Part shown: positions 1-64,000 of the stretch, in pieces
Layout of the letters: each line of letters opens with the position of its first letter
Numbering within the stretch: the stretch's first letter is position 1
NCBI GenBank assembly: GCA_976226885.1
Contig: OZ320315.1
Location: 97,464,001 to 97,528,000, forward strand
From: Iphione sp. A-MEVVRFRX5
Lineage: Eukaryota
DNA length: 64,000 nt
Direction of reading: 5' to 3'
The notes under the pieces: model-generated
What the model was told of the DNA's origin: nothing
Seen by the model: the letters and a program-made list of their open reading frames with translations, nothing else
Databases searched by the model: none
Position numbers and translations under genes: made by a program

Positions 1-405
1 CGGCTAATTGCAGATACAAAACAAATTGACACTGTTGAAGTCATTATATATATTGCCTGACGTACTCACCTAGAATAGCAATCACAGTTGGCATTTTAAA
101 TATTTGGTTCGGCTAATTACAAGTATTGCACCAATACTCTCTTAATAAAGTGATCACAGTTGGCAGTTAAGATACTGGTGTTACACTCGTAATTTGGTCA
201 AATAGCACTAGGTGTATCCAGTATGGCTGAGGTGTCGGATGGTAACAGCCATCAAATCACAGGCACAATCGTGTAATAGGATATCCCAATATACTCTCTT
301 GCATGGGGTATCACAGATTGGTTGTCTACACACACACAATCACATTCCATTCATTCATAGCCCCATTCACACTACATACTCAATTACACAAACAGTTATA
401 CATAC

Positions 406-3258
406 TCATCTCATACCATTTTTCCATCTACGCCAGTCGCACTCTTTTAGCACCTTACCCAACTTTACCTGGTTTGGAAGTTCACTCCAACTTGCTACCC
501 CTCTGTATCTCAATGATCTAGCAAATCTCATCGAGCGGGGCCTGCACACTTTCCCTCGCGTTCTGCTACCCATTCGTGTTTTGGTACCCAATCCCTTCGG
601 TAGGAGCTCCAACCGCATCAGCTTGTGCACTACCGCAGTCCCCCTATATTCGATCATGTCGAAGACCCTGTCCATACCTAGCCTCCGTTGTAGATTTGTA
701 GCACTCTGACCATCCTTAGTGATCAGTGCAGCTCTCACACAACGGTTTAGAGTGATCTGTAGCTTCACTTTGTTCGAGTAGCTAACCCCGAACAACAGCC
801 CAGCTGTGTAAACCAGATGAGTTAGCACTAGTGCTCTGAATAGCATTAGCCTCACATGAAGGGGTACCCAATGTTTTATTCTGGCAATCTGCGTAGACGC
901 TCTCCACATTTTGGCCGACGTGTTGCGGATCGCACCACCGTAGTCGAGTTTTGAATCAATGTCAAACCCCAGGAGTTTTACATTGGTTGATGCCGCTAGT
1001 TTAGTTTCGCCTATTTTCAAATCAAGGTCGAGACCAGTGGCAGTACCAAGGGGCATGTGTACGCATTTAGTAGAGCTTAGTAGGAGACCGTTGTCGCTGC
1101 ACCAATTTACAACGGAGTCAAGAGCTCGTGCCGCTTGGCTTCTCAATCGCATAAGGTCCCGCGCATGCACCAGGACAGTTAGATCATCTGCATAAAGCAC
1201 CGCTGATGCTTGGTTGGGGAGCACAGCTGTAACTGAGTCCACTACAAGGTTAAAACCTAACGGGCCAAACACCGACCCTTGCGGTACCCCATGGCAGACC
1301 ACTCTTTTGCTCGACTCGCTGTCGCCACACCTGACAAACTGACTCCTATCAGTGAGGTAGCTACTGATCATTGCCAGTAAGTTTTTACCACCCCCCACCA
1401 TCCGCAGCCGATAGAGTACATTGTCCCTGCTCACTAAGTCAAAGGCTTTTTTTAGATCGAATAAAAGCCAACATACGTACTCTTTTTGGTTAATCAGCTC
1501 TTGTGTGTCACATACGAGCTTTGCGGCCGCTGTTTCTGTACTGAACCCCTCCCTGAAGCCGTGTTGCATCATGCTGAGACTACTTTGCCGGGTCAAGTTG
1601 TTATTGATTTCCTGGCAGAACCACTTCTCACACAACTTACCAGGGAGGGGCAGTATCGACACAGGACGGTAGTTTGTCAAGTTGTTGGGGTCCCCTCCTT
1701 TGTGAATTGGACAAACCCGTGCCGTTTTCCATGCTCTGGGATATCGTCCTGTAGCATAAATCTGCTCAAATGTCCATGAAAGGAATGCTGCATGTCTAAG
1801 AAGAATTGGCTTGAGGATCCTAGTTGGGATCCCACTGAGCCCGGATGATTTTTCTATGGACACCCTCTGGACAATTTTCCTGACTTCATCAGGAGTCGGT
1901 GGGCGGATATCAAAGGTTTCGCCACGTGCGGTTGTTGATATATGCACTGGAGGTGTCCATGGCTGGCTTAACCTATCAACTGAGTCTACAAAATGGTTGT
2001 TAAATGCCTCTGCCACAGTTACTTCACTGCCCGCTTCCTCATTGACCGCGCTTGGTAGGACCATGCTCCCCTTATTCCTCCCGAGCATGTCATTTAATAC
2101 CCCCCAATTCTTTTTCATATCCCTCCCTGCCTTCTTCAGTTTCCGTTCCCAATACTCCTGTTTTTCCATCGATATTATTTTCTTGATTTCTCTATTCAAG
2201 AATTTATATATCCGATGACTATCCTCACATCCTTCACTCCTCCAGCGTTTCATGAAGTATTCCCTGTCAGCTATTACTTCCCTTGCACCTGCGCTTAGTT
2301 TGAAACCGTCCCTTGACTCCCGGACCACAACTGTTCTTGGAGGGCATGCCGCGTTTATTTCACCTCTTAGACTTTCTTCGAATGTTTCCCAAGCTTCTTC
2401 ATGATCCACCCTTATGACGTCAACAGTTTCCCCAAGGCGCCCCCCAATTTCAGACACATTCGCATTGTCCCACTTCCTGATCACCATTTCCCGTCTTATT
2501 TGACTGGTCGATCCTTTCTTTATTATTACCTCAACAGGCAGGTGGTCACTCATAGCCCATCCTCCGATACTTCCCCCCTTGTGGCCTCCAAAATTCACCC
2601 ATATGTGGTCCAGGCAATTTCCGCTTCCTACCATTGTTCCCCCTTCTATTAGTTGACTGTATCCCTTGCCCGCCAAAAGGCTCGCTATCCCACACCCCGC
2701 CTTCCCTGAGTCCCCATAATTGTAGTTAAAGTCCCCCAGAATCACTGTTTCTTGTTTGTAAGGGGCCCCCCTGGTAGTGACCACTTCGTCCAGGTACTTT
2801 ACACACTCTCCAACCTTATCTGAAGGTGGTCGGTAAACTAAGACAATTTTTAAGGGTCGTCGCTTACCACATTTAAGCGTCACACACAGTACCTCTGTAA
2901 TACTGCCCTTGGGTTCAGGCCTGTCCACACCAACTAAACGGAATGAGTCTCTGTAATAGACGAGCAGACCTCCTCCCTTCTTACCAGTCTGGGTAATCCT
3001 GTCCCTGCGAATAAGGTTATAACCACCCAATTTTAGGGTCCCATCTTCAGTCGAGTCCGTGAGCCAGCTTTCAGATAAGCAACAGACATCCACACTATCA
3101 CGCTCCATGCACTCATGCACCTCTGCTATCTTCCGACGTATACTCCTCACATTGAGGTGGACGACTTTCAGCCCCCTCATGTTCTCGCAGTCAGCCAAAG
3201 ACCAAATTTGTGAGCACACTCGATATAATACGTAAGCAAGAAAATGTCCAATGGTCAA
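406..3258 (-). CDS. LINE ORF2: apurinic endonuclease plus reverse transcriptase, uninterrupted 950 aa
   Basis: APE motifs HLNVRS, LSESWL, YRPP, GDFN, LDHIWV, SDHLPV. RT motifs YRPVSILPLPGK, QHGFR, DLKKAFD, GVPQGS.FGP, YADD, LLGF. The true start may be MRGLKVV at 3180. Confidence 0.97.
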   Translation of the reverse strand: MTIGHFLAYVLYRVCSQIWSLADCENMRGLKVVHLNVRSIRRKIAEVHECMERDSVDVCCLSESWLTDSTEDGTLKLGGYNLIRRDRITQTGKKGGGLLVYYRDSFRLVGVDRPEPKGSITEVLCVTLKCGKRRPLKIVLVYRPPSDKVGECVKYLDEVVTTRGAPYKQETVILGDFNYNYGDSGKAGCGIASLLAGKGYSQLIEGGTMVGSGNCLDHIWVNFGGHKGGSIGGWAMSDHLPVEVIIKKGSTSQIRREMVIRKWDNANVSEIGGRLGETVDVIRVDHEEAWETFEESLRGEINAACPPRTVVVRESRDGFKLSAGAREVIADREYFMKRWRSEGCEDSHRIYKFLNREIKKIISMEKQEYWERKLKKAGRDMKKNWGVLNDMLGRNKGSMVLPSAVNEEAGSEVTVAEAFNNHFVDSVDRLSQPWTPPVHISTTARGETFDIRPPTPDEVRKIVQRVSIEKSSGLSGIPTRILKPILLRHAAFLSWTFEQIYATGRYPRAWKTARVCPIHKGGDPNNLTNYRPVSILPLPGKLCEKWFCQEINNNLTRQSSLSMMQHGFREGFSTETAAAKLVCDTQELINQKEYVCWLLFDLKKAFDLVSRDNVLYRLRMVGGGKNLLAMISSYLTDRSQFVRCGDSESSKRVVCHGVPQGSVFGPLGFNLVVDSVTAVLPNQASAVLYADDLTVLVHARDLMRLRSQAARALDSVVNWCSDNGLLLSSTKCVHMPLGTATGLDLDLKIGETKLAASTNVKLLGFDIDSKLDYGGAIRNTSAKMWRASTQIARIKHWVPLHVRLMLFRALVLTHLVYTAGLLFGVSYSNKVKLQITLNRCVRAALITKDGQSATNLQRRLGMDRVFDMIEYRGTAVVHKLMRLELLPKGLGTKTRMGSRTRGKVCRPRSMRFARSLRYRGVASWSELPNQVKLGKVLKECDWRRWKNGMR

Positions 3259-3418
3259 TATACTATTTGAGTGGTGGTGTAGTAAGAAAGTAGTGGAATA
3301 TTGCTATTAAAGTCTGTGCCCGGACTAAATATAGTCAGATGATTATCAACAGGGCAACGGTGGACACACTATGGATCTAATCAGATTGTCCGATGAACAT
3401 CCATATATGGGGTAGTAT

Positions 3419-3645
3419 AAGTAAACTGTCGGTACACAATACACATATGCAAGAATAGTACAGAATACACAAGTGGATAATAACACAGAACAGAACACAC
3501 TAGCGGATAATAAGCACGGAAAATGATCATCCACATATAGGGTGGTCTAAGTTAACTGTCGGTACACAATACACATATGCAAGAATAGTACAGAATACAC
3601 AAATGGATAATAACACAGAACAGAACACACAAGCGGATAATAGTC
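3419..3645. repeat. Tandem duplication, 130-bp period, in the SGNH-ORF2 spacer
   Basis: ACTGTCGGTACACAATACACATATGCAAGAATAGTACAGAATACAC occurs at 3425 and 3555. Confidence 0.92.
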
Positions 3646-3796
3646 ACGCAAAATTGATTGGATTGGTCTGCGTAGTGTGATTTTCCTGGTTGTAGATGAC
3701 ACAAGAGTTCAAGGATATCAGAGCAACGTTTCTGGATCAGAGTCCCTTGATCTATACTACTAGAACGTGCTATTGATGAAACGATCTGACAGTTAC

Positions 3797-3833
3797 CTGG
3801 CGCTCTCCCTGGGATAACAGCTAACAACTAATA
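3797..3833. promoter_or_regulatory. Spacer segment complementary to the A1 5'UTR (partner 6240-6279)
   Basis: 3797-3809 CTGGCGCTCTCCC is the exact reverse complement of 6267-6279. Further helices: 3811-3814/6263-6266, 3815-3818/6256-6259, and 3824-3833/6240-6249 (two G:U). Confidence 0.6.
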
Positions 3834-3904
3834 ATACTGGCACATATAGATAGCAAGTTAGCAGATCTATTTAGCTAACGGAATCACGGTCAAGATTTCC
3901 CTGC

Positions 3905-4592
3905 TTAATCGATGTTCACGATATGGAGGTGTCCATATTCACGTATGAAATCCACAATTAATACCTCTAATGCAAACGACCATTCACCTACCACCTGGTG
4001 TGAGCTGGTCTGCCTTCAATAGGGAAAAGTCATTTGTCGTGACACCCCCGTTATAGGTGGTGATCGGGGCACTAAGGTCACATGGGTGCATGCCGTACCT
4101 CACTGCTGACGAGCAGCACTGCAGGTAGTGGATATATGCGGCAGCTTCCATTAGGTACTGCTCAGCGTCGTCTGTGCAGTCCGGCGAAATCACTGAGAAG
4201 TCCATCACAGGTGATGGACAGTGGACTACGGCTGGGGGTGCCGTAGCTGTATCCGACAAGACGCTCTCGATGGCATCCATGTACCACTTCACACGCTCGC
4301 TGTATGCTGCCGGGGATCCTGTGTTGACGGACCATTGGCCCGTCTCGTACTTGACCCAATCGAAGATACCTATTGCTGTAATCACGAGATGGTATCCGCT
4401 GACGTTGTAGGTCTGCAACCAAGCCAAAAGCCTCTTATATGATGCCTTTGGGATAGTCACGACGTCGACACGAGTGGGTGGAACGGAGTGTAGTTTATCT
4501 TTGAGCTGCAGCGCCGCAGGGGCCATACGCGAGTCAGTCAGCAGTAGCACTCTGGTTCGGTGACTTACATCGACTCGCGCTGGTTGCATCAT
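3905..4592 (-). pseudogene. SGNH/GDSL-hydrolase-like middle ORF of copy A1, one frameshift near 3995
   Basis: Block I-like VLLLTDSR and block III-like TAIGIFDW. After the frameshift the frame VVGEWSFALEVLIVDFIREYGHLH matches the A2 C-terminus VVVGEWTFAVQLMLSEYIQEYGHLH. Stop at 3905-3907. Confidence 0.75.
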
Positions 4593-4653
4593 TGAGGTAA
4601 CTGCGAGAGAGTAAATAACATAACCCTAAACGCTGAACGATAACATACGATCC

Positions 4654-6240
4654 TTAAGCGCTGGCAGTCGGCAAATCAGTACTAGAGGACCCAAATGAGA
4701 GAACTTCATTTCTGATTTTCACCAGCATCTTCCCTAGCAAGTTTTTACCAACGTAGCCGTTTGACCCACTTAAGGCACGTACGGTCGAGCCCGTACCGAG
4801 AATCGGGTCATTGTCAACATACACAATCTCTGATACATTACTGCGACTGAGCTTCAATCGTGCAGCCTCATTGTTTAGAAGCATTATCGACACAACTTTC
4901 CTGACCGTTACCTCTGAATTGGCCTCCCATTCTGCTGTCGAAACTATTCTGTCTCCGATTCGCTTGGCACCTTCGCCGCTCCTTGCTTTTTGAACCCTGT
5001 GTTCTGCTTCACGGTCACCGCACATGCGCGATTTGATATATTGCAGGGCGTGTTCGGGAGTTTCATAGTAGATCCCGTCCAACTTCATTGGGGTACTTTG
5101 TTGCAAAGAAAAGCAAGCGTCGTCTTTGTCGAATAATAAATTATTCCTGTCGTCGCAATCATGACTCATAATTGTGTTCTGGATCAAGTTGTTGTCATCT
5201 GGTTCGAATCTTTTACCGTCAACCACTAAGTCAATGCCACTTACGAATGCGCTGTGACCTCGTTTCCTAGCTTTTGCCGCCAGCCGCTGCTGTTTCGCAT
5301 GTAAATCAGCGGCGATCCGAGGGATATCTTCATTAATGTAGATTTGTCGATAATCTTTGAGTTTTGCTAGTACCGATCTTTTCCTGAGCAGTAGGTTCCG
5401 TGCCTCAATCGAAGTTAATAAGACGCCCACCTTTAGTTTGCCATTAATGTTGGAAAAGACGGCTGTATCCTCTATTTCGTGAGGCTTGATGCCCGCAAGT
5501 GTGTTCACCATCCTCACAATAAATGACTTGATGGATTTTTCCTCACTCGCAGGAATCCCAGTTAATACCACCTTCCTGCACCTGTCGTTGATCTCCAGAC
5601 GCATTAGATCATATTTAGTAGACATGCAGCTTTTCGAGAGATGTGATAATTGTAACTCGATGCTATCAATTTTGCTCGCAAGATCTCCGTTAACGACACT
5701 GTCATCCACCCTCCGGGTCGATTTCCCTGGTGAAATCGATGATCGTAGACTGGCAAGTTCAGCTCTAATACTTGCAAACTCAGACTTGAATTCACTGCGG
5801 ATAGCGTTAAGAACGCCTTGCCACTTACTGTTGTTTTCAGCCAAGATGTGGTCGGTGTTAGGCGCGGGAGACAGCGGCCTCCCCTCCTCCAAGTCAACGT
5901 GTATGTCTTGGTGCCCATCCGATCGAACGTTGATCCCAGCATTCTTTGTAACAGTGTCGACTCCCCCGTTATCTTTTTCAACATGAAGTGAATCCACGTT
6001 CGTATTATCACCGACCGTTTCAACGTTTGGAGTAGTTGGTTCGGTCCTGCTAGCAACTGGCGTACTCTTGTTGGTCAAGGTTGTTGTGACTGAATTATCG
6101 CTCACTGGCTCTTTGTTCTCAACATTTTCAACCGATTTGCAATCAAAACTCTCTTCAAGGCATGGTGCAGACGCCGATCTAAGCAACATTTTACTTGTAT
6201 TCGCCCGTGGAGTAGGCAGCTTTTGCGATCTTCTGCCCAT
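4654..6240 (-). CDS. LINE ORF1 (coiled coil plus L1-type RRM/CTD) with C-terminal NADAR domain, 528 aa
   Basis: Heptad region; RCRKVVLTGIPA; IYINEDIP. Then a YbiA-like block: DGIYYETPEHALQYIKS, AKRIGDRI, EWEANS, DNDPILGTG, GKNLLGKMLVKIRNEV. Confidence 0.88.
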   Translation of the reverse strand: MGRRSQKLPTPRANTSKMLLRSASAPCLEESFDCKSVENVENKEPVSDNSVTTTLTNKSTPVASRTEPTTPNVETVGDNTNVDSLHVEKDNGGVDTVTKNAGINVRSDGHQDIHVDLEEGRPLSPAPNTDHILAENNSKWQGVLNAIRSEFKSEFASIRAELASLRSSISPGKSTRRVDDSVVNGDLASKIDSIELQLSHLSKSCMSTKYDLMRLEINDRCRKVVLTGIPASEEKSIKSFIVRMVNTLAGIKPHEIEDTAVFSNINGKLKVGVLLTSIEARNLLLRKRSVLAKLKDYRQIYINEDIPRIAADLHAKQQRLAAKARKRGHSAFVSGIDLVVDGKRFEPDDNNLIQNTIMSHDCDDRNNLLFDKDDACFSLQQSTPMKLDGIYYETPEHALQYIKSRMCGDREAEHRVQKARSGEGAKRIGDRIVSTAEWEANSEVTVRKVVSIMLLNNEAARLKLSRSNVSEIVYVDNDPILGTGSTVRALSGSNGYVGKNLLGKMLVKIRNEVLSFGSSSTDLPTASA

Positions 6241-6399
6241 ATTAGCCGTAAACGCGTTATATTCCCGGGAGAGCGCCAGCGTACGTCCTACCCCGTTCGT
6301 GCCATAAGAATGAAACTGCCGATCCCCGAAAGCAACACGTACTTCAAGGTTCCTAGGGTAAATGCTCGTTTGAAGATGGGGTACAGAACAAAAACAAAG

Positions 6400-7800
6400 G
6401 CATTATGTGTGCATTTGGAAATAGAGGTCAATAGCACAAACAGCAATACCATCAGTGATGTTTCTTAGTATTTTACCCATTGCTATATGTCGACCTACCT
6501 TTCAGCAATCCATGCTGATGTCTTGACCAAACGTTTATTCTAATAGTTCTTCACCTAAGCGTTTATAAAACAAAAACTCTTCAAATATTTTTCCAGGCAG
6601 TGGTAATGTGCTAATTGGTCTGTAATTATGAAGTCATTCTCTGGTTCCTTTTTTGAATACAGGTACTCTTTTGGCTTTCACTCGACTACATATATACCAG
6701 TACTCAGGAGACAATGCCTTGTAGCCCTCCTTCAAGTATTTGGTGCTCAGGTGGTCTATAAAGAGCTAATACTGATTATGGTTTATGTTTTCTAAAGTGA
6801 TTCGAATATATCAGTATTACAAGCCAATTCATGCAGCTGTTTTACCTTCCAATCGTTGTTAACATAATTCCACTACCTTTTGTTGGCTTGTGTGACCTGT
6901 CTCGTGTCTGATAGCCTTATATTCAGTTTGATGTAAGAGTCACCTAGCCAAGTCTCAGTGAAACATGTAATAGTACAGTTCAGCTGCAGTATGTCGTCAT
7001 GTATCTTCTTGAAAAACACTACTTACATTATAATACTGAATTATGAACTTCATTGTAGTGAATTACAGGTTGATGTATTGCTACAACCATTTTATAGATG
7101 ATTTGTAGGTTTCTTTCAATCAGTTTTAGAGGTGTTTTATACAGTTCATAGAGCAATAACACAACAGGACAGTTCGAGTTTGCAACAGGATATGATGAAA
7201 TGCTTGACGATACGACCTAGTATGAGCACAAGATGAGATAGGAGCAAACAGTATACCTAGATCTCATTATACCAAAGGTCTGCTATATAACCTGGTATCT
7301 CACCTTAATTTTTCGATCTCGTCATACCAAAGGTCTGTTATATAACCTGGTAACTCACTTTCTGACACTAGGTCATCCCTGAAAACAATACAATGATCAA
7401 GTATTCGATTTATAGGCGTGCAAGTGTCAGGTGTTCCAAAACTGTTGCAGCTGTTCATACTTTCTGCTAGTCCATTATTAATGGCCACATGGATATTCAA
7501 GTTCATGTCGTACTCATCAACGTTTTTGACCATTGAACACCACTGTGTGAAAATATGGTTGGAACAAAGCATTTCTAATAGTGGTCATAGTGTACAGCCA
7601 GGGATCCTGGGATATATTGTCCAGCGAGTAAATCCCCAAGTAGATAAAGGTGACATCTGTGTCTATTGTTGGAATACTGGGGAGCTCTGGGAGCCTTTTT
7701 CCATGTATTGATCAATGTCGTCATCCTTGATGAAAGATCATATTTTGTATGTGTTCCCACTTCTGGGACCAGGAAACTCTTAGTAGAAATACTGTTGAGC
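6400..7800 (-). pseudogene. Decayed, internally deleted LINE: SGNH-like remnant, APE remnant, RT remnant
   Basis: Minus-strand fragments YLLGD and IHVAINN (7400-7650); TCFTETWLG (about 6950); PVFKKG and NYRPISTLPLPGKIFE (6580-6670). Confidence 0.65.
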
Positions 7801-10249: not shown

Positions 10250-13200
10250 ATAAGGTGCTTAGGTAAGTCACTTATTCGAGGAACATGAGGTGAAGGGTTT
10301 CTACCAGAGTGATAAGACGCTACCGGGCACAACACTGGGTCAGGTGCCGCATGGAAAGTGACCCCTCGATTCTGATAATAACACTGCTAAAGTTTTTGCC
10401 CACTTCCGGAACCACAATAAGTGAAAGGCGCTGTAACATGACATTCCCTTGATAAGTGACGAGTAGGACCATACCACTGAGCTGCCATGGGGGCAACATC
10501 TGATTGTCAGAGACCCGCTTAATACATCACCAAAATAGCACATAACAAACATCTGCTGCATGATGTGCTTAATATCGCTTGGGTCAAACAGCTCCTCTGA
10601 TGGGGAACGTGAGTCTTCAATCGTCGTACATCCAGAGCCAGCCGCACTTCCCGCGAAGCAAAGGCCGACGCGTCACCATGGGCATCAGCCAGGAATCGTC
10701 ACATGGATCCAATGATATTGATGATGGTACCAGGACAGCTGAACTGCATATGTGATAGGGTGTGTCTAACCTGCGCAATGGACAGTTGGAGCATGTATGC
10801 GCAAATCGCTTGTGAACACCAGTGGCCGAGCTTCATTGTGGTACGGACGGGGGTGCCATCCTATAAGGCGACCTGCACCCCTCCACGCCTGAGACCATGT
10901 ATTGTGGGATGGGGCGCCGGGACGTCCACGCACTATAGGGCATCAGCCCACAGTCAGCGCGCCACTCGTAGTGGGATTGCATCTTTTTCACAAGGAAAGG
11001 TGTAAACCAGATGGTCAGGGAGGCCGGAGTCCACGTCCTGTTAGGCCGCTGCATACGATACACCATGTAACGACAATCTCCTTTGTCTGGTTCGGTCTAG
11101 TCTTGAACCACCGGGCATGCTGCTGTCGATGACAGCATCACGTTTCCATAAATGATATCTTGGATTGAATGCAGCCATTGACTGCAGGAAGAGGTTAGAC
11201 TGCCGGAGAGGCGAGAGGAAAAGCTGCATGAAACCCAAGGCAGCCTGTCAGCCAATGGTAGAGTGACCAAGGGCATCTACTAATTTCCTCAGCAGTCCAG
11301 CAGGAACAATCGGGGGATGACGATGTGGACTAGGCGTGATCCTCAATGCCCTGATAGCATTCTTTACTTGACAGCTATCCCATGGTGCTGTATATCTGTC
11401 CATATCAACGTAGTGCGCCTTGATCTGGGAGATATTATTAGCTACATACGGGGCCGGGATGCCAGGTATTCAATGTACTCACATACATATCAGATCGCTG
11501 GTGCCAGTGGGTTAAAATTATATTTACAGGCAAAATCATCAAATCTCAACAGCCGAGAGATGGATTGTTGGTGTCCCTGGTCTGACTGCCTGCGTCTGCA
11601 GGACTTCCACGTGTCTTAATAGGGCGTCATACTCGGGATCTGGAATGTATCAGAGATAGGGGGCATAATTATGAGCCCAAGCAGATGGGGATACAGATTG
11701 TAGGGCATATTGTTTTATCATAGCTCTGTATTTTCTGCGGCGGCGGACGAGTTCCCCACGTGACTGAGAGCGTCTGCTACTTGCATTTCGGCATCTGGGA
11801 CGTGCTGGCCCATTGTTGCAGCTTGCATCCATAGGGCGTGAGCAGAAGTGTTAATGACATGGCCGCGGCCCCTACCATGGTTGAAGATGTTGACAGTCGG
11901 CTTTTTATTGCACCTAATAAGGATGATGTCTCCGTTGTCGATACGTGGAGTGAATGTCCTAAGTGCCAGGAGGCAATTAATAGCCTCCAATTGGCTAATG
12001 TGGTGAACTTGAGCCACTGCCTTAGGCCAGATGTACGAGTACATGACAGTTCCATCAGTAGCTCCTGCTCCAGTGATGCAGGCATCTGCTTAAATCAGAA
12101 CATTGTGGGGGAGCGGAGCTAAGAATGATTTGCAGTTGCACTTTTCATTATACATTCGGAGCCAACGAAGATCCACTATGACGCTCGTGTTCTGCATTTC
12201 TGATTGCCTCAAGAAGGCGGCACATATACAGTCTGGCTGGAGCTATGATCTTGGCAAGATGGTTAACCTTGCCTGCTAGTCTCCTTGCCTTGCATAACGA
12301 AATGTCCTCATTTGCTGCCTTCACAAAGTGTTTGACATAGAACCGAAGCTTCTCTGTCAGTATTGACAACTGCACTTTGTCCATGTTAAAAACAACTCCC
12401 TGCCACTTGACTTGGTATGCTGGAGGCTGGAGTTTGGCCGTTGCCACTGTGAGGCCAGGTGATGTTGCACTGTTCGATAGTCTCTTTCTGCATCACGGTC
12501 TGCATGTGTGATGATGAGGATATCATCCAGGTACATCAGTGTTTGTATACCAATAGCAGCAAAGTGTTTGACCTAGAAATCCGTGACCCTGTACATACAC
12601 AAGGCAGAACAACCCGCCCCAAAAGCCAATGCCATATCTACATAGTAGGCTCTGTGCGTGAAGATTCCTTATAAAGGCCAATCTCCAGAAGACATCTGGA
12701 AATGTCTATAGGCCCTTTTTAGGTCCACGACTGTGACAAGAGGCGGTGTGTCGTCTTGCAGGAGCATTCACACTGCATCGCTGATTGTTGGCAATCTTTG
12801 GTCATGTCGTGTGCCTGCGATAATCTTCTTCTCACTATATTTGTTGACATTCGCTTGCTGTGGGTATGACAAATCGACTATGACTCCCCTTGATTCGTCA
12901 GGCTTTGGGTGAGTTATTAATGGTGCAACATTAAACCACGGATAGAATGGGGCATCTTGAAAAGGTCCAAGCAATGCGCCGTCCTGCAATTAGGTCTCGA
13001 CATAATCAGATATGGCTCGAGGAAATGCTGGTGCTGATGGGTGATTGTCTGTGTCGACATTAGACAGAGGGGGGCTTCCATATCCCATAGGAAACCCATA
13101 GCCAACGCCCATCAGCACAAGCTTATCATGAGGGTGCCCAGTAGTCCCGTTTTGCCATTGTTGGAATGGCAGACTGCTGTCAACTGGGATCCTGGCTGCT

Positions 13201-15604: not shown

Positions 15605-15795
15605 CCCAGTGTTTTTTTTTTAAATGTTCTAAAAAAGTTTTTGTAAAACGTTTTTAGAACGTTTTTTCCAAAAAACGTTCTAAAAACGTTTTCTTATCTG
15701 GTTAGGAAAACGTTATACAAACTTTCATTTACAACATTTTAACGTTTTTTACAACGTTTTTACAACGTTTTTAAAACGTTTATGTGTTGGCTGGG
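15605..15795. mobile_element. Small non-autonomous DNA element (CCCAG...CTGGG termini) with AACGTT repeats and a central palindrome
   Basis: Terminal CCCAG/CTGGG. Perfect 23-bp inverted arms at 15645-15667 and 15670-15692. No clear TSD. It interrupts a LINE RT remnant (RHQHGFLPG at about 15860-15890). Confidence 0.6.
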
Positions 15796-23025: not shown

Positions 23026-23027
23026 TT

Positions 23028-23180
23028 AAGAGAATACGTGGACATGGTGAAAATACAAATGGCCGTACGAGTTGAGTATGGGAATAATTTTTGAACGAGG
23101 CCGCAGGCCGAGTTCAAAAATTATTCCCATACTCAACGAGTCGGCCGTTTGTATTTTCATCTTGTCCACGTATTCTTTTT
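23028..23180. repeat. Long imperfect palindrome at the Crypton terminus
   Basis: About 75-bp arms around a GCA loop; perfect 26-bp core GTTGAGTATGGGAATAATTTTTGAAC. Confidence 0.93.
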
Positions 23181-46175: not shown

Positions 46176-46188
46176 CCAATATATAAAA

Positions 46189-48140: not shown

Positions 48141-49139
48141 AAGTACTCTATTTCGTTTGACATTCCATTTTGCTTAGTTTATGCAATAGTATTGTATGAT
48201 TTACTTCAGATATTTTTATTGAGGTCTCCGCACATGTTTACAGAGTTTTCCACAGCAATAGGTATTGGCTATAAAACTGGAAATTAAGTGACAAAGTATC
48301 TAATAGAGAAGTAGATAATTTAAATAATAGTAACAGTGTTGTCAAAACTAATTTTGTATAGGTATTTGATAAACATATGAAAGCAATGAACCAGAATATA
48401 ATGTAGTAAGTAAACAAAAGTAACAAGACACTCAAATATTCATAATTGATCGCAAAAGCAAAGTACAGTTCGAATCTTATTTACAGAATAAACTTTCCAC
48501 AAAATACATGATTACATACGCTAAGCAATTAACGGCATGACATATAGAGAACAGTTTATGCACAACAAGAGCCACACCCACCACCATCTAACTTGATACA
48601 GCAGTATGAAAAACATGCAAGACAAATAGAATGGGCAAGTAAACTGGTACAAACAGCGGCACGAAATAAAGACGAATTATGACATGGAAAAATTGATTAA
48701 ATATTAAGTAAATGTACATGCATGGGATAACACTGACTAGTAAACAATAGAGTAACTCAGAAGTTGTATGCAATGAGCTCTTCGCCTGACTTCAATCAAA
48801 ATTTACTGAAAACTTGCATGGATAACCCTGATTATACAAGCTCTAAATAAGGCCACAACATGCCTGTAACTGTACATGCCCTCATAGAGCGGTACAATAC
48901 ATCTACCACTTCCTGGTTTTATACAGACGATCATGAGCATCGCAACAGAGACTAGCAATCAAACTTATATGTAAAGAGTCCAAGATATGTACTTATGAGT
49001 TTGTACAGATAATGAAAACCCATAGTACTATATCATTTGCAAGCTTGTTTCATTGAGATCCAGGATCTGACTACACATAGGGTTAGACAGACAATACAAG
49101 TTTTTCATTATGGACAACACTAGCCTGACTTCACAATAG

Positions 49140-51884
49140 GCTCAAGTACACATACTATCAGGTACCCTTTTGCTAAGCTTTACACTCAGAGGTAGGGCAT
49201 TCCATTTTACAGTGCCTTTTTGGCGGAATGACTTAGCATACATTGCACTGGTTGGTTTGCTCACCACTCCACATAGTCTGTCCAAGCCTTGTCATCGTCT
49301 TGGCTTTGGAGGGTATGAGCCCAAGACTCATCAGCCTATGCGTACATTGCATGCCTCTCACAGCAATTATCTCCTCAATCCTAGGAACATTGAATCTATC
49401 ATGTAGTACACGAGCAGGCAAGTAGTTTCTTACCTGAAGGCAAACTCTGGCACATTTATGTATGAAGGATTGTAACCTAATTCTCTGTGATACACTGATA
49501 GCATACAACATAACAGCATGATATTTGACATGCGCTAGTACTAGTGACGCAAATAATTGTTTCCTAGCTGAGATTGGTAGTAGGTGCTTGGCCCTGCCAA
49601 CATGTAAAGCTGCCAGCCACATCTTCTTTTTAGGGCTTTGATTGTTTGGTTACACTTCAACTGACTGTCCCCGGAGTAGCCTAGAAGAGTGCAGTTTGGA
49701 ACCATTTGCATTGGTTCACCATCTAAAGTTAGATCCAAATCAGCTCCTGCTGCTCTACCCACCTGCAGGTAGGAACACTTAGAGATACTCAAGACTAGTC
49801 CTGTTTTGTGACTCCATTCAGACACGGCACGGATTACCTGCGAGCAGCGATCTCGAAGGCGGAGCAGATCCCTAGCACCAATAGTTATTGACAGATCATC
49901 AGCATAAATGGTCGGTTTACAGAACTTTGGCAAGTGTTGGACTATATCATTGATGACTAAAATGAAAGCGTAAGGCCCAACGATTGAACCTTGAGGCACA
50001 CCATGCTTTACAGGTTTAATTGACGAGACTTCTCCCCGACACTTTACTCTCTGGTACCTGTCGTTGAGATAACTACTGAAGAAACCCCTTGTCTTATGAC
50101 CAACCCCAAGTTTCGCTAGTTCAGATAATATTTTGCCATGTGGGATTACGTCAAAGGCCTTTTTAAAATCAAACATTAATATTGTGGTATATAGCCCTTG
50201 ATTGCAATATTCCTGAGCGTCACCTATGATTGTCATGATAGCAGTTTCAGTAGATCTTAAACCCCGGAAACCATGTTGTGCCATATGTAGCAGTCCCTGT
50301 GACTCAATCCAACCCATCATCTTTCCCATCATCCATCTTCCCAGGAAGTGGGAGTATGGTAATTGGACGGTAGTTTGCAATGTCCTCTTTGCTCCCTTTC
50401 TTGTACACCGGTGTTACCCTCCCCTGTTTCCATGACATAGGGAATGAGCTAGCTAATATGCAATTGACAAACACCCAGGTTAAGAAGGCATGGAATCTAA
50501 TTAGGACAGGTTTTAAGATTTTGGTAGGGACACCATCTATTCCAGAGGGTTTTGTTGTCTTTTGTTTCTTGATCAGATCCACTATCTCTCTTGATTCTGG
50601 AATAGGAAGCTCAAATTGTTGATCAGTCATACTATTGACACATTCATGCTCTATTCTTGTGTCATCTACTAGCTTGTCAACCTCACTAATGAAGAAATTG
50701 TTGAAGGAGTCAGTTAGTTCCTTATTCCCATTAATATTACTCCCTGCACTAGGTAAGATGTCCTTATTACCTGCTCTTCCCGTCGCCTCATTAAGCACCG
50801 CCCATGTTCTTCTGGAATCACCATGTGCATCACTAAGTCTACTCTGCCACCATACCCTCCTTTCTGATTTTAAGGCCTTCTTCACTTTCTTGTCAAGATA
50901 CTTGTAAATTCTCAGGTCATCCAATGTACGGTACTTTCTCCATTTTTTGAAGAAATATTCCCTATCTTTATGCAGGCTATTTAGCCCAGCACTAGGTTCA
51001 AAGTTGTTTCTATCCAGCCTCACCTTTCTACTTTTTTCGGGGCAAGACAATGCCAGTTCTTCTTTTAATCTAGCCTCAAATTCATCCCATCTCTGCACAT
51101 GATCTCCTTCCATTATGCCAACTCCACTACTTTCTAGGGTTTCACATAAGTCAGGCACATCTACCTTTCCCCATTCCCTGTAGTTCTTAGTTTCAGACCT
51201 ACAGAAGCCCCCACCTTTCTTTATTGTGACGGATATCGGGAGATGATCACTCAGGTGCAGAGAACCTACTTCAGACCCCCTATGGTCATCAAAGTTCACC
51301 CATAGGTGATCAAGGCATCCCTCAGAATCGATCATAGTGGAATCTGTTACCAACTGCCTCATCCCTCTCCCATGTAGGTAGTTAGCCGCCCCTAACCCCA
51401 CTTTGCATGTATTTGAGAAATGGTAATTGAAATCCCCCCAAACCACCCTGTCACTTCGTCTCAGATTGAAAAAGTCTTTCATAGCATAGTCAATAGCTGA
51501 CACAGAGTCCGATGCCTTGTCACCTGGCGGCCTGTATACACAGAGCAGTTCAATTGGACGTCTCATTCCTGCCTTTAGTTTTATTCCTAAGATTTCTGTC
51601 GATGAGTCTGCAACTGTTAATACTCTACTGTCCAGCACAGTGTAATGTGACCTATAATAAATAATGAGTCCACCCCCCTTTTTCTTGCTAGTTGGGGACC
51701 TGTCTGCCCTGACTGTACTGTACCCTGGGATATAAACGCTGCTATCCAAGTGATTACTTGATAGCCAACTCTAAGTTATCCCACAAATGTAAACACCCTC
51801 TTTATAGAGATAATCAGCTAGACAGTTTTTCTTCTTAGCTATACTCCTTATGTTGTAGAACATTATCTTGGCACCAGGGGCCAT
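49140..51884 (-). pseudogene. ORF2 APE-RT of copy A2 (one stop, about 3 frameshifts)
   Basis: MAPGAKIMFYNIRS (ATG at 51884), YRPP, GDFN, SDHLPI, YRPITILPLP, QHGFR, DFKKAFD, GVPQGS, YADD. Confidence 0.93.
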
Positions 51885-52550
51885 TTCGAAGATGATAGGG
51901 ATAACAGGACTGAGGTAGTTAACACAGAGTCAGTATCACAGTTAGCAGTGAATGTTTGGTAGATAATGACCAAACCTTATATGAACACAATGTAAGCCAG
52001 TAGTTCAATATATAAAAAGAAGAGATAGAGTATGGAAAACAATTAAGGAAGAGAAATTTACACGGCTTCGATAACCATTGAACAAACTGACTAGTATGAT
52101 ACACTGAGATAAATTATATGTGGGTAGAATAGTGCCTTGTGGGATAAATCGCACTTAGCACTCAACATTTACACAGATATATGCGAATTGCTGTATGCAG
52201 ATAAATCAAGAAAGCTTCGATTTAACTAACAACTTGGATATATTCAAGTTTTAGCAATCATTGAATGTTGACCAATTGTTAGAGAACCACCACGCACTCA
52301 TAAAGATCGATTGAGTGTGAGAAAGAATACAAGTACAGAAACACCTGGGGTATTTCATCCACAATGACTTAGTAGAGTTGGTGGACACTGTGAGTAGTGG
52401 TATTGAGTTACAAACCTTAATTCACATACAATCTACTGGTACCAGACTGTACACAGATAAGAGATTATGCCAAAGATTCAAGTTAGTTGTGTACGTAAGT
52501 ACTGGTTGTCAGTGCACTATGTCTATGCGTTCTATAAGTGCTCTCTGTCC

Positions 52551-52569
52551 GTGCTCCCCCGGCAACATC
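52551..52569. promoter_or_regulatory. Spacer segment complementary to the A2 5'UTR (partner 55743-55761)
   Basis: GTGCTCCCCCGGCAACATC vs the minus-strand UTR GTGCTCTCCCGGCGACATC: 17/19 identical, and both differences give G:U pairs in the element RNA. Confidence 0.65.
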
Positions 52570-53090
52570 CAGCACCCAAGATGGAAAAAAGAAATCCTCC
52601 TGATTAAATCACAGAAAAACTCTCATGAGTAAATCAAAAAGTAATGATATGTTTCTTAAACACCAGTCTAAATGACCTCCTGACTAAATCATACAGTTAA
52701 AGGTAAGTGTATTAAATATGTGTATGTACCGTCAATATTACGCAACCAAACTATATACCATTAACACATAAATAAACACAGGTCTCACCCAAGGTAGGGG
52801 CAAAATATTACAACACGATACATAAGTAGAATATTAGGTAGATAATGTAATAGAAGAGGTATATAAAGATCCTGGTAATATTCATTGCAAGCGCACCACC
52901 AATTTTTGGCACTTAACATAAGTATATCTGAGGTAACATGCTAGGATACTATTGACTCTCAGATAATCTAGCAAGATATAAGCTTAATACCAGCGGTGTA
53001 CACAGACTAGTGCCATATTCATTGTGCTCACCCAACTGGTTGTTGGTATTTCTGTTGTTGCAGGCACAAATTACCCAATCCAAGGACATC

Positions 53091-53780
53091 TTATGGATGT
53101 GAATGGTGGAGATGTCCATACTCCTGAATGTACTCTGACAGCATAAGTTGCACCGCAAATGTCCACTCCCCCACTACCACCGGTTTGGGGGTGTACCCAT
53201 CACTGCCTAGTAGTGAAAAATCATTCACAATATCCCCATCAATGTTTTTACTCACAGGAGTGGAGAATAGGCACGGGTGAAGTCCAATGGAGCATGCTGA
53301 GTCCTCGCAATACATATTGCTAATGTAGACGGCCATGTCTAGCTTCAGCTGCTCAAGATCGTCCTCAATATCCGGTTCAAATCTCTGGAGGTCCACACTT
53401 GGTGACCCACAGAAGATCAGATGTGGTTCACCCTCGCCTGAATTGCAGCGCCTTGCAATTCTGGAGATACTCTTTCGGATCTTCTTAGCGTACTCAGCAG
53501 GAGTACCAGTTTGGACGCACCACTGGCCAGTCTCCCATCGCAGCCAGTCGTGCGCACCAGCAGCAATTATCACCAGATGAAAATGACCGACGTCTCCATA
53601 CGACAGCCAACGTGCGATGCGCCTGTAACTACAGCGTTCAAGCGTGATCAGATAGATTTTCGTAGGTGGGAGGAGATGCAAGACTCCTTGCAGTCCCTTA
53701 AACGCTGGGGCGGTTCGCTCATCCGCGATGATCAGTACGTGTGTACGATGCGTGACTGACTCGTACGCTGGGTACTGCAT
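53091..53780 (-). CDS. SGNH-like middle ORF of copy A2 (open; probable start MQYPAY at 53780)
   Basis: Collinear homolog of the A1 middle ORF (HRTHVLIIADER, AAGAHDW, WETGQW, GLHPC, NDFSLL). Confidence 0.8.
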   Translation of the reverse strand: MQYPAYESVTHRTHVLIIADERTAPAFKGLQGVLHLLPPTKIYLITLERCSYRRIARWLSYGDVGHFHLVIIAAGAHDWLRWETGQWCVQTGTPAEYAKKIRKSISRIARRCNSGEGEPHLIFCGSPSVDLQRFEPDIEDDLEQLKLDMAVYISNMYCEDSACSIGLHPCLFSTPVSKNIDGDIVNDFSLLGSDGYTPKPVVVGEWTFAVQLMLSEYIQEYGHLHHSHP

Positions 53781-53907
53781 CTTCGAAGCTGAAACACATC
53801 CAATGTACATGGTTCTAGCAAGCATCATTACTCAGAAAACATTAGCTAGAGTGAGATGATACACGATCTATTGCATGATATAGTGTGTATGGCACTAAAT
53901 CAGTAGT

Positions 53908-55724
53908 CTAACCTACTAGTTCTTCTCTTATTGACATTAGGGCCTTTCCCAAAATGTTTTTTCCATCCACAACATTAGTCGACTCGCAGTACCCGTTCCT
54001 AATTCTGGGTCACGATCAACATATTTAATAGATTGCTTGCCAGTCGCGATCAGCGCAGCTTTAGCCTCCCTGTTGTTCCTTATTACATGTCACATCACGT
54101 TATCCATAATTACCTTTGAATTGCAATCCCATTTTTCTCCTTTCTGCACTTTGCGATTCACTTTCCTTGCTTCCTCCACTGATTCGCAGTTGTTTATTTC
54201 TCGCGCGAAATCTAAGTCTCGCTCCAAACGAGATCTTAGGTGGTGGAATGCGACTTCCGGTGAATCGTGTTGTTTACCTTCGAGGATTAAGGGGGAGAGG
54301 CATGCTGGTGATAATAAGTTGTGGTCCCTGTCAAAGCAAAACTCTTTGCCAGTTTCGACATAGTTTAGACCATTGGTACGCAGAAATTCCGGCAAGTATG
54401 CAGTATCTTTTGGGGTGTATTTCGCTCCATCTATGAACAAGTAGACACCCCTGACACTCGCTTTACTACCATGTGCACGGGCCTTGTAAGCTAGTCTGTG
54501 CTGTTTTCGATTTATGTCAGTGGCACTGGGAGGTAAGTCTTCCCTGATGAAGATACATTTTAGCTCCTGCATTGTATTGAGTTTGCCTTTGCTTTTCAGA
54601 ATTAGGTTCCTACCCTCTATTGAGTCCAGTAAAACCACCACTCGTATCTTGCTCCTCTGTTCACCTAGAATGTTGTAGTCAACAACTTCAGCAGGCCTAA
54701 TGTTCGCCACCATCTTCACTATATGTCGAATCCTTTCACCCACGTTGTTTCTGTGTTTCGCATCTATCCGATCAATAACAACTCTCCGACAGCGATCCTT
54801 CACCTCAATTCTCGTCAAGTCTAGTTTGAGGTTATTGCACTTGTCTCCAATTGCTCTTATGTGCTCATCCATCTTTATCAATTGTGATTCAATTTCAGAG
54901 TGCAACTTTGTTGTATGCCTTTGCTCTAATGTTTTCCTTTCTTCAGCTAGTTTCACAATGCTCTCTTTAACACCTGTTAAGTCTGTCCTTATAGCAGACA
55001 ATTCACCGTCAACTCGCTCCTTAAAAAGAGTGAAATCCTTTTCTAGGTTGCTCATAGAGTTAAGTATCATATTGTTTATTCCAGAGCGCCTTGAGTCAGC
55101 CCCAGGGATGTCACTACTTGAAGTTTGATCAGGCGTGCCCTTCAAACCTACGTCCTGGATCACAGGTAAGGATGTGTCCGATCTAGTGACACCAACTGTC
55201 ACATCCGATTTTGTTGCATTCCCGCTCGTACAAACTGTGCTCTCATCATCATGTTCGACCAGATACCTATCCTGATTTTCATCCTGATCATTAGTAGATA
55301 AGGCACAGTCCACAGGATCCTTTGGTATAGCCCCTTGTCCAACGCTGTCACACACTGACACCGACTCCAGGGAACCGGCCATGTCATGTTTATGCAGTAC
55401 AACTTGTGAACCGCTCCCTATTTGCTGGTCCTGTGTGCTGTCCTGTGCAGCAGCAACACTTTCATTAGGATTGTTGCTACCGATCCGGACTGTCTTGTCT
55501 TGAGCAGCCCAATCAATCTCACCTTTGGTCAGCTTCTTGAGGGTGACAGTTGGTCGCAGATACAGCAGCACCATTTCCCTATTGTCACCCGTCAGTTTGA
55601 AAACCATATTTGGATCGATCGCATTGCCATTTCCATTGCAGATCCGGTCACCTACGATTCTTGTTGGCAGTCTCGGTAGAATGTTTGCCTTGTATGCATT
55701 CTTTTTTGGAGCTTTAGTTCCCAT
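53908..55724 (-). pseudogene. ORF1-NADAR of copy A2 (stop at 54090, frameshift near 53980)
   Basis: RCRRVVIDRI, IFIREDLP, EGKQHDSPEVAFHH. After the stop: YVDRDPELGTG, then GKNILGKALMSIREEL. Confidence 0.88.
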
Positions 55725-55899
55725 GATTACCCACTGGAACTCGATGTCGCCGGGAGAGCACTGGAGCCACGTCTACTCAGGCGCCATGTTCAATACTTTC
55801 TTTTACTGAATCAGATCCCTTGCGACAATCAAAAATATGGCCTTAATGTACCTGTTGCTATTTAAGGCTTCATATATATAATTAGTAAAGACTGTAGTT

Positions 55900-57030
55900 G
55901 CTGTTCCTGTGCTATAGTTTGATCTAAATCCATATGTTGTGTGACTCCAGATAGTCAGTCATTTGTCCATGTAAATCCTTTTCTATTTTGTTTGAAAATA
56001 TACTGAGTATGCTTATTGCCCTATAGTTACCTATATCAATATGAGTTCCCCCTTTATGTTTCGCAGTTTCACACAATTCTTTCCAACCTAATGGAATGTA
56101 TTTGAAGCATAAAGACTGATTAATTAGGTTCTTTACCTCTGTTTTCAAGCTAAGTAGTATATCCCTAGAGACTGTCATGTTAATATCGAGCCACCCAGTT
56201 GGTTTATTTGTGGGTAGTTTTTCAAAGTCACATACTCTCAACAAATTCGAGGTTAGAACCACCCTGATAAGTCCCCCCTCTCAGTATCGCCCACTTTGTC
56301 TAATTGTCTCAATATACTTGGTCCAATGCCAATGTAAATTTTTTGATTTCTTCACGATATATTAAGCTGTTCAAGAGGTTTCGATTTACTATAATATTTC
56401 ATAATTCTGAACCTTCTGCCCTGATCATTGAAGCAGCAAGACCAATAATAGAATGAGATAACAAGGTAACACGTGTCGACTGTTGAACCAACTGCGTCAT
56501 ACCATATTCATTCATATTCAAAAACTTACTTGTGGTTGGTGTATTTGTCGCCATGTTGTAATTGAAATCTCCAGTAATAATTATATGCTGACTTTCTTTA
56601 CATTTCCTCCTAATACTATTGATTAAATCATAAAGAACGGCCTACGGTACTGTCGCCGGCCGATACAACCAACTAGTTTAATAACGCCCTTCGTTTAGTA
56701 TTGTAGGTAAATGGATATCAATTCTATCTGTCCATCTTATAAATCTTCCCAAATTTCTTTGTACGATAACATATCTTTAATATAGACAAAGGTCCCCCCC
56801 TCCTACAACTCCTGCCCTTTTTCGCTTCCTATCATTTCGTATCATTCTATACCCAGTTATTTCGACAAGTGAATCTGAAATCTCGACACTTAACCAAGTT
56901 TCAGACAATACATGTATTCCAAGTAGCGAGTCTTCGTTATAAACATAGTCATGTACCTGTGCTAGTTTACTCACTCGACTTCTGATATTCATTACAACTA
57001 TGATATATATGTATATATTATGTATATATA
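55900..57030 (-). pseudogene. Internally deleted LINE APE/RT fragments
   Basis: MNIRS, LSETWL, GYRMIRNDR; NYRAISILSIFS. Confidence 0.8.
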
Positions 57031-57339
57031 AAATCAGTCTTGCAGAATAAGGGCCGCTCAGTAGGGAATACGGAAGAAGATGATGAATGATGAAATGAAA
57101 CATATATTTGCACAGTCATAGCTTTCAGATCATGGATGCAACGGTCAGTGTGCATCATAAATATAATTACACCACAAGTAGGCAGTACTAGTAAAGTTTG
57201 GAGTGAAAGATATAGTGCCTAAGTAAACAATAGTAAGCGTAGTAGTAGTAGTATATCATAATGTACTGCTAGTAGAATATACTAGATTTCTAGTATTGTT
57301 CAGTACAGACCATATATATCAGCAGAATAAGAAGGATTT

Positions 57340-60300
57340 TCAAGATTCAAGGTTTTATTGTTATCTGCGTGTACAGAGTTCATCATGACTGAATACAAAA
57401 AAGAACAGTGCTGGACTCTTCAGTATGCATAAGGTGCATACTAGGCATTTACTACTTAGAAAATAGGTTACCTATGTAATTCTTGTGTGCACAATAAAGT
57501 CTCAAACTTCCTCGTCATCTCTTGTCTTCTTTTACCACAACCAACTATGTATTAACACTCGTGACTCTATTCGTCAATCACCGTGCGCTACAGACAAACA
57601 GAGTTACAGACGCCACTAGCTGTCAGATAACATAAAAACAAGTCACTACCTCACATGTTACAGTGTATCGTCTATAAAGCAGTTACCCTTCCATATGACC
57701 AAACAATGTGATAATACAGAGAGTCACAGACGCCACTGGCTATCAGCTGAACTTATATACAGTTATCGCAAGCACACGTTGCAGTTACCCTTTGATACGA
57801 CCAACTAATATGAAACCTATTGATATAACAATGTCACAAAGTCACAAAGTTAAGGGCAGTCCCACTCCCATGGTACGACCAACTTATATGAAACCTGTTG
57901 ATATAACAATGTCACAAAGTCACAAAGTTAAGGGCAGTCCCACTCCCATTACAGCATGCCGAGACCTATGGATATCACAATGTCACAAAGTCACAAAGGT
58001 TAGGGCAGTCCCACTCCCATTACATCATGCCAAGCAAAGCATCTCTTTTTAAAGCACCCCACATTGACATCAGCTTCTTTATCAACACTTAAGTGTCCTG
58101 TTTACCTCCACCATTTGACATTGCTTCCCACGTCCGTACACACATTACACCTTTAATGCCCATACCTTCAGTTCAGACATTTCCCTCATTCATCTACACG
58201 TTCACATCAATCATTCATCGGCACGGTACAGTTGGACCTTCATTCTCCCCAAACCCCTTCCGCTGAGAGGGTCAACCTGTGACATAAGCCCCCTTGGGCA
58301 GCTTCAGGCTCATTTTTGCTCCTTCTGACAATGAGTTCCACCTGCTCATCCCTTTGTAAGCAGTTGAGCAAGCAAAGGCAGTGGAGCGTGGCCTCTCAAT
58401 GCTAAACCTAGATACACGTCCTAGCCTAGTTTTTGCTTTCTTGCATTTATTCAGGAGGCCTAGGTGAAACAAGCGGTGAAGTGCACACAGCCCTTGACGT
58501 TGTATCACACGATCAATTCTCTTGATTCCTAGCTTCTTATGCATAGTAGAAGCTGACAGGAATTCCTCATGTTGCAGGGCCATCCTGCAGCACTTGTTAA
58601 GATGGATCTGCATGCCCACCTGATCTGAGCTGGACAGGCTGTACAATGAGACCCCATGATATCTGAACATGGGTAACAGTAAGGCTTTGACTAAATGTAG
58701 GCTGGCCTTAAAGGGCAGCGTTCTCTTCAGCCTTCCCAGCCACTAACAGTGGCCCAAGTTTTCAACTTTACCACTCTCATGTTGTGTTTCATCGTCAGAT
58801 TGCCATTCAGATGGAATCCTAACAGCGTTATCACCATTTCCAGCCTCAGATCCAAGGGGATGCCCAAGTGGCAGATAAGCACACCACTTAGGGCTAGGCA
58901 GTAGCCCAGTCCTAGAACTCCAGTCATGGAAAGCATCCTGTACCCTCAGTGCCACTGCCCATAGCCTTAGCAGGTCTCATGACCAAACCAAGACCAACAA
59001 ATTGTCCGCCTACATGACAGGATAGCTACATTCCAGTAGACACGACAGCAGCGAGTCCACTACTAGTGAGAAGGCGCTTGGTCCAAAGACTGAACCCTGG
59101 GGGACACCCTGCTTCAAACTGTTATCTTACGTCCAGTTACGTTACTAAGCCAGTTACGTTACTAAGCTTATGTAGTATCCTCCATTCAGGAGGTCCCAAG
59201 CCTTGTTCATCAGACAGGCAATTGCTGCCTCCGTCCCTCTCCCAGCTCTAAAACCATGCTGGAATTCGTGTAGCTTGTTTTCCCAATCTAGCTTGGTCCT
59301 CAGCTCCGGTATGAACCAACCCCCAGAGATTTTACCCTGAATGGGTAAAATTGACACTGGTCTGTAATTGGAGACTTCATTCGGGTTACCCTTCTTGAAT
59401 ATAGGGATGACCCTGGTGATCTTCCAAGATCTGGGATACCTGCCTCTGCGGTATGACGACTTTGTGATTTTCTGTTTCTTGATGATCCGCAGGAGTTGAG
59501 GTGGCATAGGTGGAGACAGCTCGAAGCCAGTTGTGGTGGCACGCACTATCGTGGCCTCCTCAGTTTTGCATATTTCGCTCAGGCTTTCAACACCCTCAAT
59601 GAAGTAAGAATTGAAAGCATCTGCTACTAATAGCCCTCCTTCTGCCATAATTTTCTCACTATCCGGCAGTGCTTTTTCTTTGTTGGACGTACCTAGTGCA
59701 TCATGTAGTATGGACCACAACTTGGCACTGTCATGTCCTGCTTCTCAAACCCTGTGTTCCCAGTGTTTCTTCCAAAACAACTTTCGGCTATCTTCACCAG
59801 TGGCTATCCACCACTGCTCAGGCTGCCTTCACTACTACTGATCAGAACCTAAATTCTCCACCCGTCCTGCCAATCCCAAACTACTTGTTGGAGATTTATT
59901 CACCTCAGGCCCCCATCCCCTGCATTAAGAAATATGGTTAGGAGGCTGTGAATGGCAATCAAAGAGCTGGTCTACTTGACAATACTTCTTCTCGGTGGTC
60001 ACTCTCCACTCTCCCCTCTCCTTCATCTCACTGGTACAGCCTCACTCGCATAGTGTGCAGGCATAACGGGGTCCTTCTTCGCACCCCTCACACATGTTGT
60101 AGACTTCTACAACATGAAAAACATGGAATGTTGAAGTTATGGGGCACCCATTCCCCCTCTCCCCAATGTACCCATCACACAAAAAAGCAAAGTACAAAGT
60201 GGGATGCATAGAATGGGGACCCTCATACTCACTTTCCAGGCATCTGCCCCCTTTGAGTACACCCTGGGGTCTCCTCTACTAGGGCCTCCTTGTCGCAAGA

Positions 60301-62900: not shown

Positions 62901-63199
62901 GTCACAAGCCAATGACAAGAAGTAACTTCTGGAAGTAACTTCTTTTGTGCAGAAAGCACATGTAAACCTTGGTGTTGTCATCATAAGACCGGTTTTAAGA
63001 CTGATGATAACTTGCTACCCCATGTTTATACCACTGCTGCTCACCATCAAAGAGCCTTTATATTCACTTTGATAATTACAGGTGATGAAAGATCATACTA
63101 GGATGAGGGGGTAGCAGACCAGGTGCCCTGAGCCTTTATTTTTTTCATTAGCGCACCCAGTTGTTGTAAATTTGTAGCCCCCCCCCCCTCTTGTCTAAA

Positions 63200-64000
63200 G
63201 CTATGGATTGAGCCGTGCGACGGATCATAGCCTAGCGATCTATCAATGATTCTGAGGATATCTGAGGATATCTGATATTACTTGCATCTGAAAGGGCCTC
63301 TTTTGTACAGGATCCCTGAATAATGGTTGGGGGTGCTCGTCTACTGGATCTGCATCACACATCTGTTCCAAAAGGGCAGTTGGGCAATACATTTTACCTG
63401 CTATCCTCTGCACGAGAATGAATCTAGCCTGGTTCTGCGAAAATGTTTTTGACAATGCTGTGCTCTCATGACCAAATGCAATGTCCTGCCTAGTCGACTG
63501 CTTATTACAATCGTATTCAATATACCACTTTGTAAATATGTTTGACTGACGAACAGGTGAATAATGCAATACGCTAAATATTGCCTTTAGCACTGTTGCT
63601 AATAGCCCCATCCTATGGCAGAATTCAATGTGTTTTTTAAACGTTCAAATGTAACTGACCACATTCATCATACAACGTGGAGGTATGTTCCTCTTTACCG
63701 ACATTATTGCTGTAGTGACCTTGATACGCTGACACGCCTGGTAGCTATGCTGGTCGACGACGAGCCTCATCATCCTCAGGGCCGATACATGCTGCTCAAC
63801 TACTCACTGGGGAGATGAATTTGTTTAAATACTCAATGTACAAACATATATCATCTGGACAAATCGGTTCCATCAACATATCATAATGTGAAAAGAATCC
63901 TAGGGCTAATTTAAACATACAGAGCCTGGCTCGGTGTGTGGACTGAGTTACCCCCTGCTGCTGTCGTATGGCTGCCTGCTGTGCTAGCTTTGTTAACCAT
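63200..64000 (-). pseudogene. Ngaro-type tyrosine recombinase fragment, copy 3
   Basis: ICLYIEYL; KAIFSVLHYSPVRQSNIF; TRQDI; SKT; YCP; PLF. Confidence 0.78.

Follow-up and report, generated by a model that had tools for sequence, protein, structure and literature searches.

A 64-kb stretch of the genome of Iphione sp. A-MEVVRFRX5 (C4:97464001-97528000, hereafter the window; C4 is the 118.4-Mb contig OZ320315.1 of the 1.18-Gb genome) was found to lie inside an array of transposable elements (TEs) that are placed, almost without exception, on one strand. When 100 kb were added on each side of the window, 46 of the 48 coding TE loci in the resulting 264 kb (about 96%) were on the minus strand, in every TE class. 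On balance, we favor the interpretation that the window is the internal part of a uni-strand, flamenco-type source locus of PIWI-interacting RNAs (piRNAs), organized as one long plus-strand transcription unit. All coordinates follow the numbering of the window, and the flanks therefore extend from -100000 to +164000.

Orientation of transposable elements in the window and its flanks

The coding capacity of the window was examined by scanning stop-to-stop open reading frames (ORFs) of all six frames against Pfam, the plus and minus strands being searched separately. None of the 84 plus-strand ORFs of at least 80 aa gave a Pfam match, and the 150 plus-strand ORFs of 52-79 aa (positions 1-58.9 kb) yielded no TE match and a single chance-level non-TE match; in all, no TE family was matched by the 234 plus-strand ORFs of at least 52 aa. 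The 111 minus-strand ORFs of at least 80 aa matched RVT_1 (ten times), NADAR (three times) and Phage_integrase (twice), as well as Exo_endo_phos(_2), DDE_1, HTH_Tnp_Tc5, DUF3504, THAP, RT_RNaseH and RNase_H, and 128 short minus-strand ORFs added one further weak RVT_1 match. ORFs of at least 200 aa numbered 20 on the minus strand versus two on the plus strand, and both of the latter (27783-28424 and 30622-31296) are antisense frames within a DIRS-like element, where the GC content is 59-64%. These matches correspond to 16-19 separate coding TE pieces, all of them on the minus strand (two-sided binomial p = 3e-5 for 16 of 16). The initial annotation, which had reported about 25 TE fragments on the minus strand and none on the plus strand, was thus borne out as to strand, and its number is fair as a count of fragments. 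Among the families it had named, the long interspersed nuclear elements (LINEs), DIRS-like elements, Crypton, pogo and THAP were verified in the window; MULE was detected in the flanks only, and Penelope and Ngaro were not confirmed by name.

To cover the flanks as well, iterated local profiles seeded with the domains of the window were run on all ORFs of at least 40 aa across the 264 kb, and the 81 plus-strand flank ORFs of at least 100 aa were scanned against Pfam. The local profiles alone counted 44 minus-strand and two plus-strand loci (binomial p = 3e-11, computed on these 44 of 46), and a second recombinase family added two minus-strand loci. By class, the ratio of minus to plus was about 30:1 for LINEs, about 9:1 for DIRS-like elements and about 9:0 for DNA transposons, the last comprising five pogo loci, two MULE loci, one Crypton and one THAP ORF. 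The minus-strand flank ORFs matched RVT_1 (seven and 13 times), DDE_1 (four), MULE (two), integrase (two) and NADAR (four). No Gypsy or long terminal repeat elements were seen in the array. The bias therefore persists through 100 kb on each side. Beyond the 264 kb, whole-genome DNA searches located two stray matches only, the first being a LINE reverse transcriptase (RT) at -283.7 kb, also in minus sense. The second, a copy of the window repeat at 8.0-8.8 kb, was observed at C4:97733110-97736661 (about +270.6 kb), inverted relative to the copies in the window; the bias could end or flip before +270 kb.

Two loci depart from this orientation. The first, at +138990 to +145036, is an intact LINE with three ORFs (ORF1-NADAR, SGNH-like, and endonuclease-RT), to which all Pfam matches of the plus-strand flank ORFs (RVT_1, endonuclease, NADAR) were confined. 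The closest copies elsewhere share 93-95% identity with this element, which may have inserted recently or be polymorphic. The second, at -58177 to -57563, is an isolated tyrosine-recombinase fragment (E 3e-18 and 27% identity to the DIRS recombinase); it is without a further copy in the 264 kb and adjoins a minus-strand fragment from a different recombinase family. Three further plus-strand ORFs of at least 200 aa were considered as exceptions. Two of them proved to run antisense to minus-strand genes for recombinases, and the third, at +110.9 kb, stays unassigned, with no TE or other credible match.

The same orientation was apparent at the DNA level. When the 264 kb, less the satellites, were compared with themselves, 14 families of dispersed repeats emerged, joined by 24 links, of which 23 were direct; the sole inverted link involves the plus-strand LINE. 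Only one dispersed duplicate longer than 1.5 kb was present outside the satellites, a LINE pair of 2.8 kb at 81% identity, and none exceeded 3 kb, so that the number of loci is not inflated by duplication. The LINE, DIRS and pogo families occur elsewhere in the genome on both strands in roughly equal numbers, indicating that the bias is local and not a property of the assembly. The array is of mixed age: some elements are 94-99% identical to copies elsewhere, and the decayed fragments around them share 66-80% identity with other copies. The run of TE ORFs is broken by tandem arrays (+75400 to +99100 and -94300 to -90900) in which the repeat unit measures roughly 0.9 kb.

Possible origins of the bias

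The genome contains five gene loci encoding a Piwi domain (C2:129.40 Mb, C1:40.06 Mb, C4:107.59 Mb, C19:28.68 Mb and C1:167.01 Mb), four of which are of PIWI type and one of AGO type in the sequence of the C-terminal exon. In a PDB comparison of one locus per type, the PIWI-type sequence matched Piwi with an E value of 5e-31 versus 3e-12 for AGO2, and the AGO-type sequence gave the reverse. The sequence features expected of a uni-strand piRNA cluster are thus found together here, namely a high density of TEs, their co-orientation at the level of both loci and repeats, and PIWI-clade Argonautes in the host. Because unrelated families are co-oriented, a reference direction from outside the elements is needed across the region, and a long transcript is, to our knowledge, the only known reference direction that acts on all TE classes. 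We propose that a plus-strand transcript would be read through the whole region as one unit. TEs lying antisense to it would be tolerated and would give rise to antisense piRNAs; sense TEs, with termination and splice signals of their own, would prevent transcription of the precursor beyond them and be removed by selection. The near-total bias in all classes points to such a removal of sense insertions as terminators of a long precursor. The idea of the initial annotation that the window belongs to a uni-strand piRNA cluster gains partial support from the size and TE density of the region, from a near-complete co-orientation that includes old and young, unrelated and nested elements, and from the PIWI genes; the plus-strand transcription that it proposed is a prediction from this arrangement.

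Several points weigh against this interpretation. Transcription, its plus direction and the production of piRNAs are read from sequence architecture only, and neither a promoter nor the end of the bias was met within the 264 kb. Poly(A) signals are not depleted on the plus strand, since AATAAA occurs 143 times there and 207 times on the minus strand, an observed ratio of 0.69 versus 0.59 expected from composition. Small-RNA profiling of the annelid Capitella teleta revealed no piRNA locus longer than 10 kb (PMC8915122); the PIWI pathway is present in that species, but with loci of at most 10 kb and no massive cluster, as against an array of at least 264 kb here. If the present genome is of annelid type, C. 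teleta would be its closest relative studied so far in which a PIWI pathway is present. Further, the bias of Drosophila flam-type clusters concerns Gypsy-type endogenous retroviruses only, whereas the one described here, known from the DNA sequence alone, concerns LINEs, DIRS-like elements and DNA transposons, and a bias in all classes is just as compatible with any long essential transcript. CpG depletion was considered as a mark of germline transcription and rejected, as the array (0.47) falls within the range of random loci elsewhere (0.22-0.76). Neither CpG depletion nor the counts of poly(A) signals discriminated between the readings.

The best-surviving alternative, although an unlikely one, is that the array fills one or more giant introns of a host gene on the plus strand, or belongs to another long transcript that does not yield piRNAs, and that sense insertions, by ending or mis-splicing the host transcript, were selected against. 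The same selective logic would account for the bias in every TE class, and in this respect the array resembles host-gene introns, where sense insertions into a long transcript are likewise disfavored and co-orientation results. However, TE orientation biases in introns are partial, and are weak or absent for DNA transposons, whereas the bias here is about 96% overall and 9:0 for DNA transposons. The plus-strand ORFs of the 264 kb (at least 52 aa in the window and 100 aa in the flanks) contained no credible non-TE domain, and the ORF scan detected no exon, although short exons would escape such a test. Recursive splice sites of the fly type (AGGTRAGT with a pyrimidine tract) were absent from both strands of the 264 kb, and an intron of at least 0.5 Mb would be extreme. 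The intron alternative, which the initial annotation had also raised, is therefore weakened by these three observations, the missing domains, the missing recursive splice sites and the near-complete bias, and it remains a rival.

Improbable, in our judgment, is an orientation bias of insertion itself, without selection on a transcript, through target-primed reverse transcription that favors the T-rich strand of earlier A-rich LINEs or through the direction of replication forks. The plus strand is indeed T-rich (81119 T versus 71042 A), and a self-reinforcing bias would be conceivable for LINEs, which form the majority of the loci, but it leaves unexplained why cut-and-paste pogo and MULE elements, the Crypton and the recombinase-bearing DIRS-like elements are co-oriented too. 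Growth of the array by insertion at specific sites of a tandem repeat was ruled out, because satellites occur only between +75 and +99 kb and between -94 and -91 kb.

We assign a similarly low probability to transcription from the minus strand, in the sense of the elements, or to the lack of any unit transcription, in which case co-orientation would serve another role in heterochromatin. The plus direction is deduced and not observed, which leaves room for this view; yet the excess of AATAAA on the minus strand means that long minus-strand transcripts would be cut often, and we know of no co-oriented array that is transcribed in this way or plays such a role. Finally, an artefact in which segmental or tandem duplication or assembly error multiplied a few independent events is very improbable, for although nested pieces are not fully independent and three tandem arrays lie within the 264 kb, the only dispersed non-satellite pair above 1.5 kb is the 2.8-kb LINE pair at 81% identity, the 14 repeat families are small, with 2-4 copies each, and many fragments, from about eight superfamilies, are present only once.

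Elements mapped in the window

A map of the window was built from the per-ORF scans and the local profiles (Table 1). The first of the two LINEs with three ORFs (409-6402) has copies elsewhere in the genome at 95-99% identity, and the second (48205-55803) has a 98% identical copy on another contig. The full-length DIRS-like element is represented elsewhere by at least 18 near-full-length copies (88-96% identity) and the pogo element by at least 24 copies (88-94% identity), on both strands in each case. The DIRS-like element has a GC content of 56-64%, together with the long open antisense frames mentioned above.

Table 1. Features of the window, in window coordinates.
Feature	Coordinates	Strand	Components or basis
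Whole window; internal segment of a co-oriented TE array continuing for at least 100 kb on both sides	1-64000		
Intact three-ORF LINE	409-6402	minus	ORF1-NADAR 4657-6402; SGNH-like ORF 3987-4625; ORF2 endonuclease and RT 409-3303
Decayed RT fragment, DIRS-type profile	11721-12492	minus	local profile
Short LINE RT fragment	15783-15947	minus	local profile
LINE ORF1 NADAR fragment	18779-19156	minus	Pfam and local profile
LINE RT in two parts with a Crypton between them	22717-26438	minus	22717-23025 and 25668-26438
Crypton, nested in the LINE and co-oriented with it	24067-25701	minus	tyrosine recombinase, DUF3504, QRICH1-like domain
Full-length DIRS-like element with 37-bp inverted termini	26418-32505	minus	recombinase 26967-28148; RT/RNase H 28152-29672
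LINE ORF1/NADAR fragment	32680-33569	minus	
Decayed RT fragments	40730-42132	minus	local profile
pogo DNA transposon	44027-45274	minus	DDE_1 and Tc5 HTH; ORF 44081-45097
ORF with THAP zinc finger	46193-46486	minus	
LINE RT fragment	47666-48130	minus	local profile
Second three-ORF LINE, near-full-length	48205-55803	minus	ORF1-NADAR 54093-55772; SGNH-like ORF 53094-53831; ORF2 49544-51929
Additional LINE RT and endonuclease fragments	55806-57115	minus	local profile
LINE RT fragment	58746-59744	minus	
Tyrosine-recombinase fragment, second DIRS/Ngaro-like family	63101-63644	minus	53% identity to the recombinase ORF at -49.5 kb

Two long open frames on the minus strand (344 and 291 aa; 36278-38185) lie in a strongly A-rich stretch and may not be genes; neither matched Pfam, and an Atlas search with the 344-aa ORF (36278-37309) gave no usable match. 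In the upstream flank, one minus-strand ORF matched NUMOD1, a DNA-binding module of homing endonucleases. An Rfam search of the window returned no match, and a literature search on LINEs carrying NADAR found nothing.

Relation to known piRNA clusters

Giant uni-strand piRNA clusters in which TEs are captured almost entirely in antisense have been documented in depth mainly in Drosophila. Like flamenco and the flam-like clusters of that genus, the array described here is a TE graveyard of hundreds of kilobases in which co-orientation is near-complete, insertions are nested and young elements stand beside old ones; it differs from host-gene introns in that its bias reaches every class without a detectable exon. 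The flam-type clusters of Drosophila span 227-1085 kb and show a clear strand bias (PMC10643416); the present array agrees with them in size. More tentatively than the assignment of the window itself, we suggest that the array may be one of several uni-strand piRNA clusters of flamenco size (at least 0.5 Mb) in this lophotrochozoan genome, with selection on orientation acting on every TE class instead of on one retrovirus-like family.

If this is true, giant uni-strand TE traps would seem to be an ancient solution, common to animals in general, and not a specialty of flies. The coordinates of the array permit a strand-resolved RNA test of flamenco-type traps outside insects. Should such traps exist there, it would become decidable whether element orientation is maintained because antisense piRNAs are selected for or because premature termination of the long precursor is selected against.

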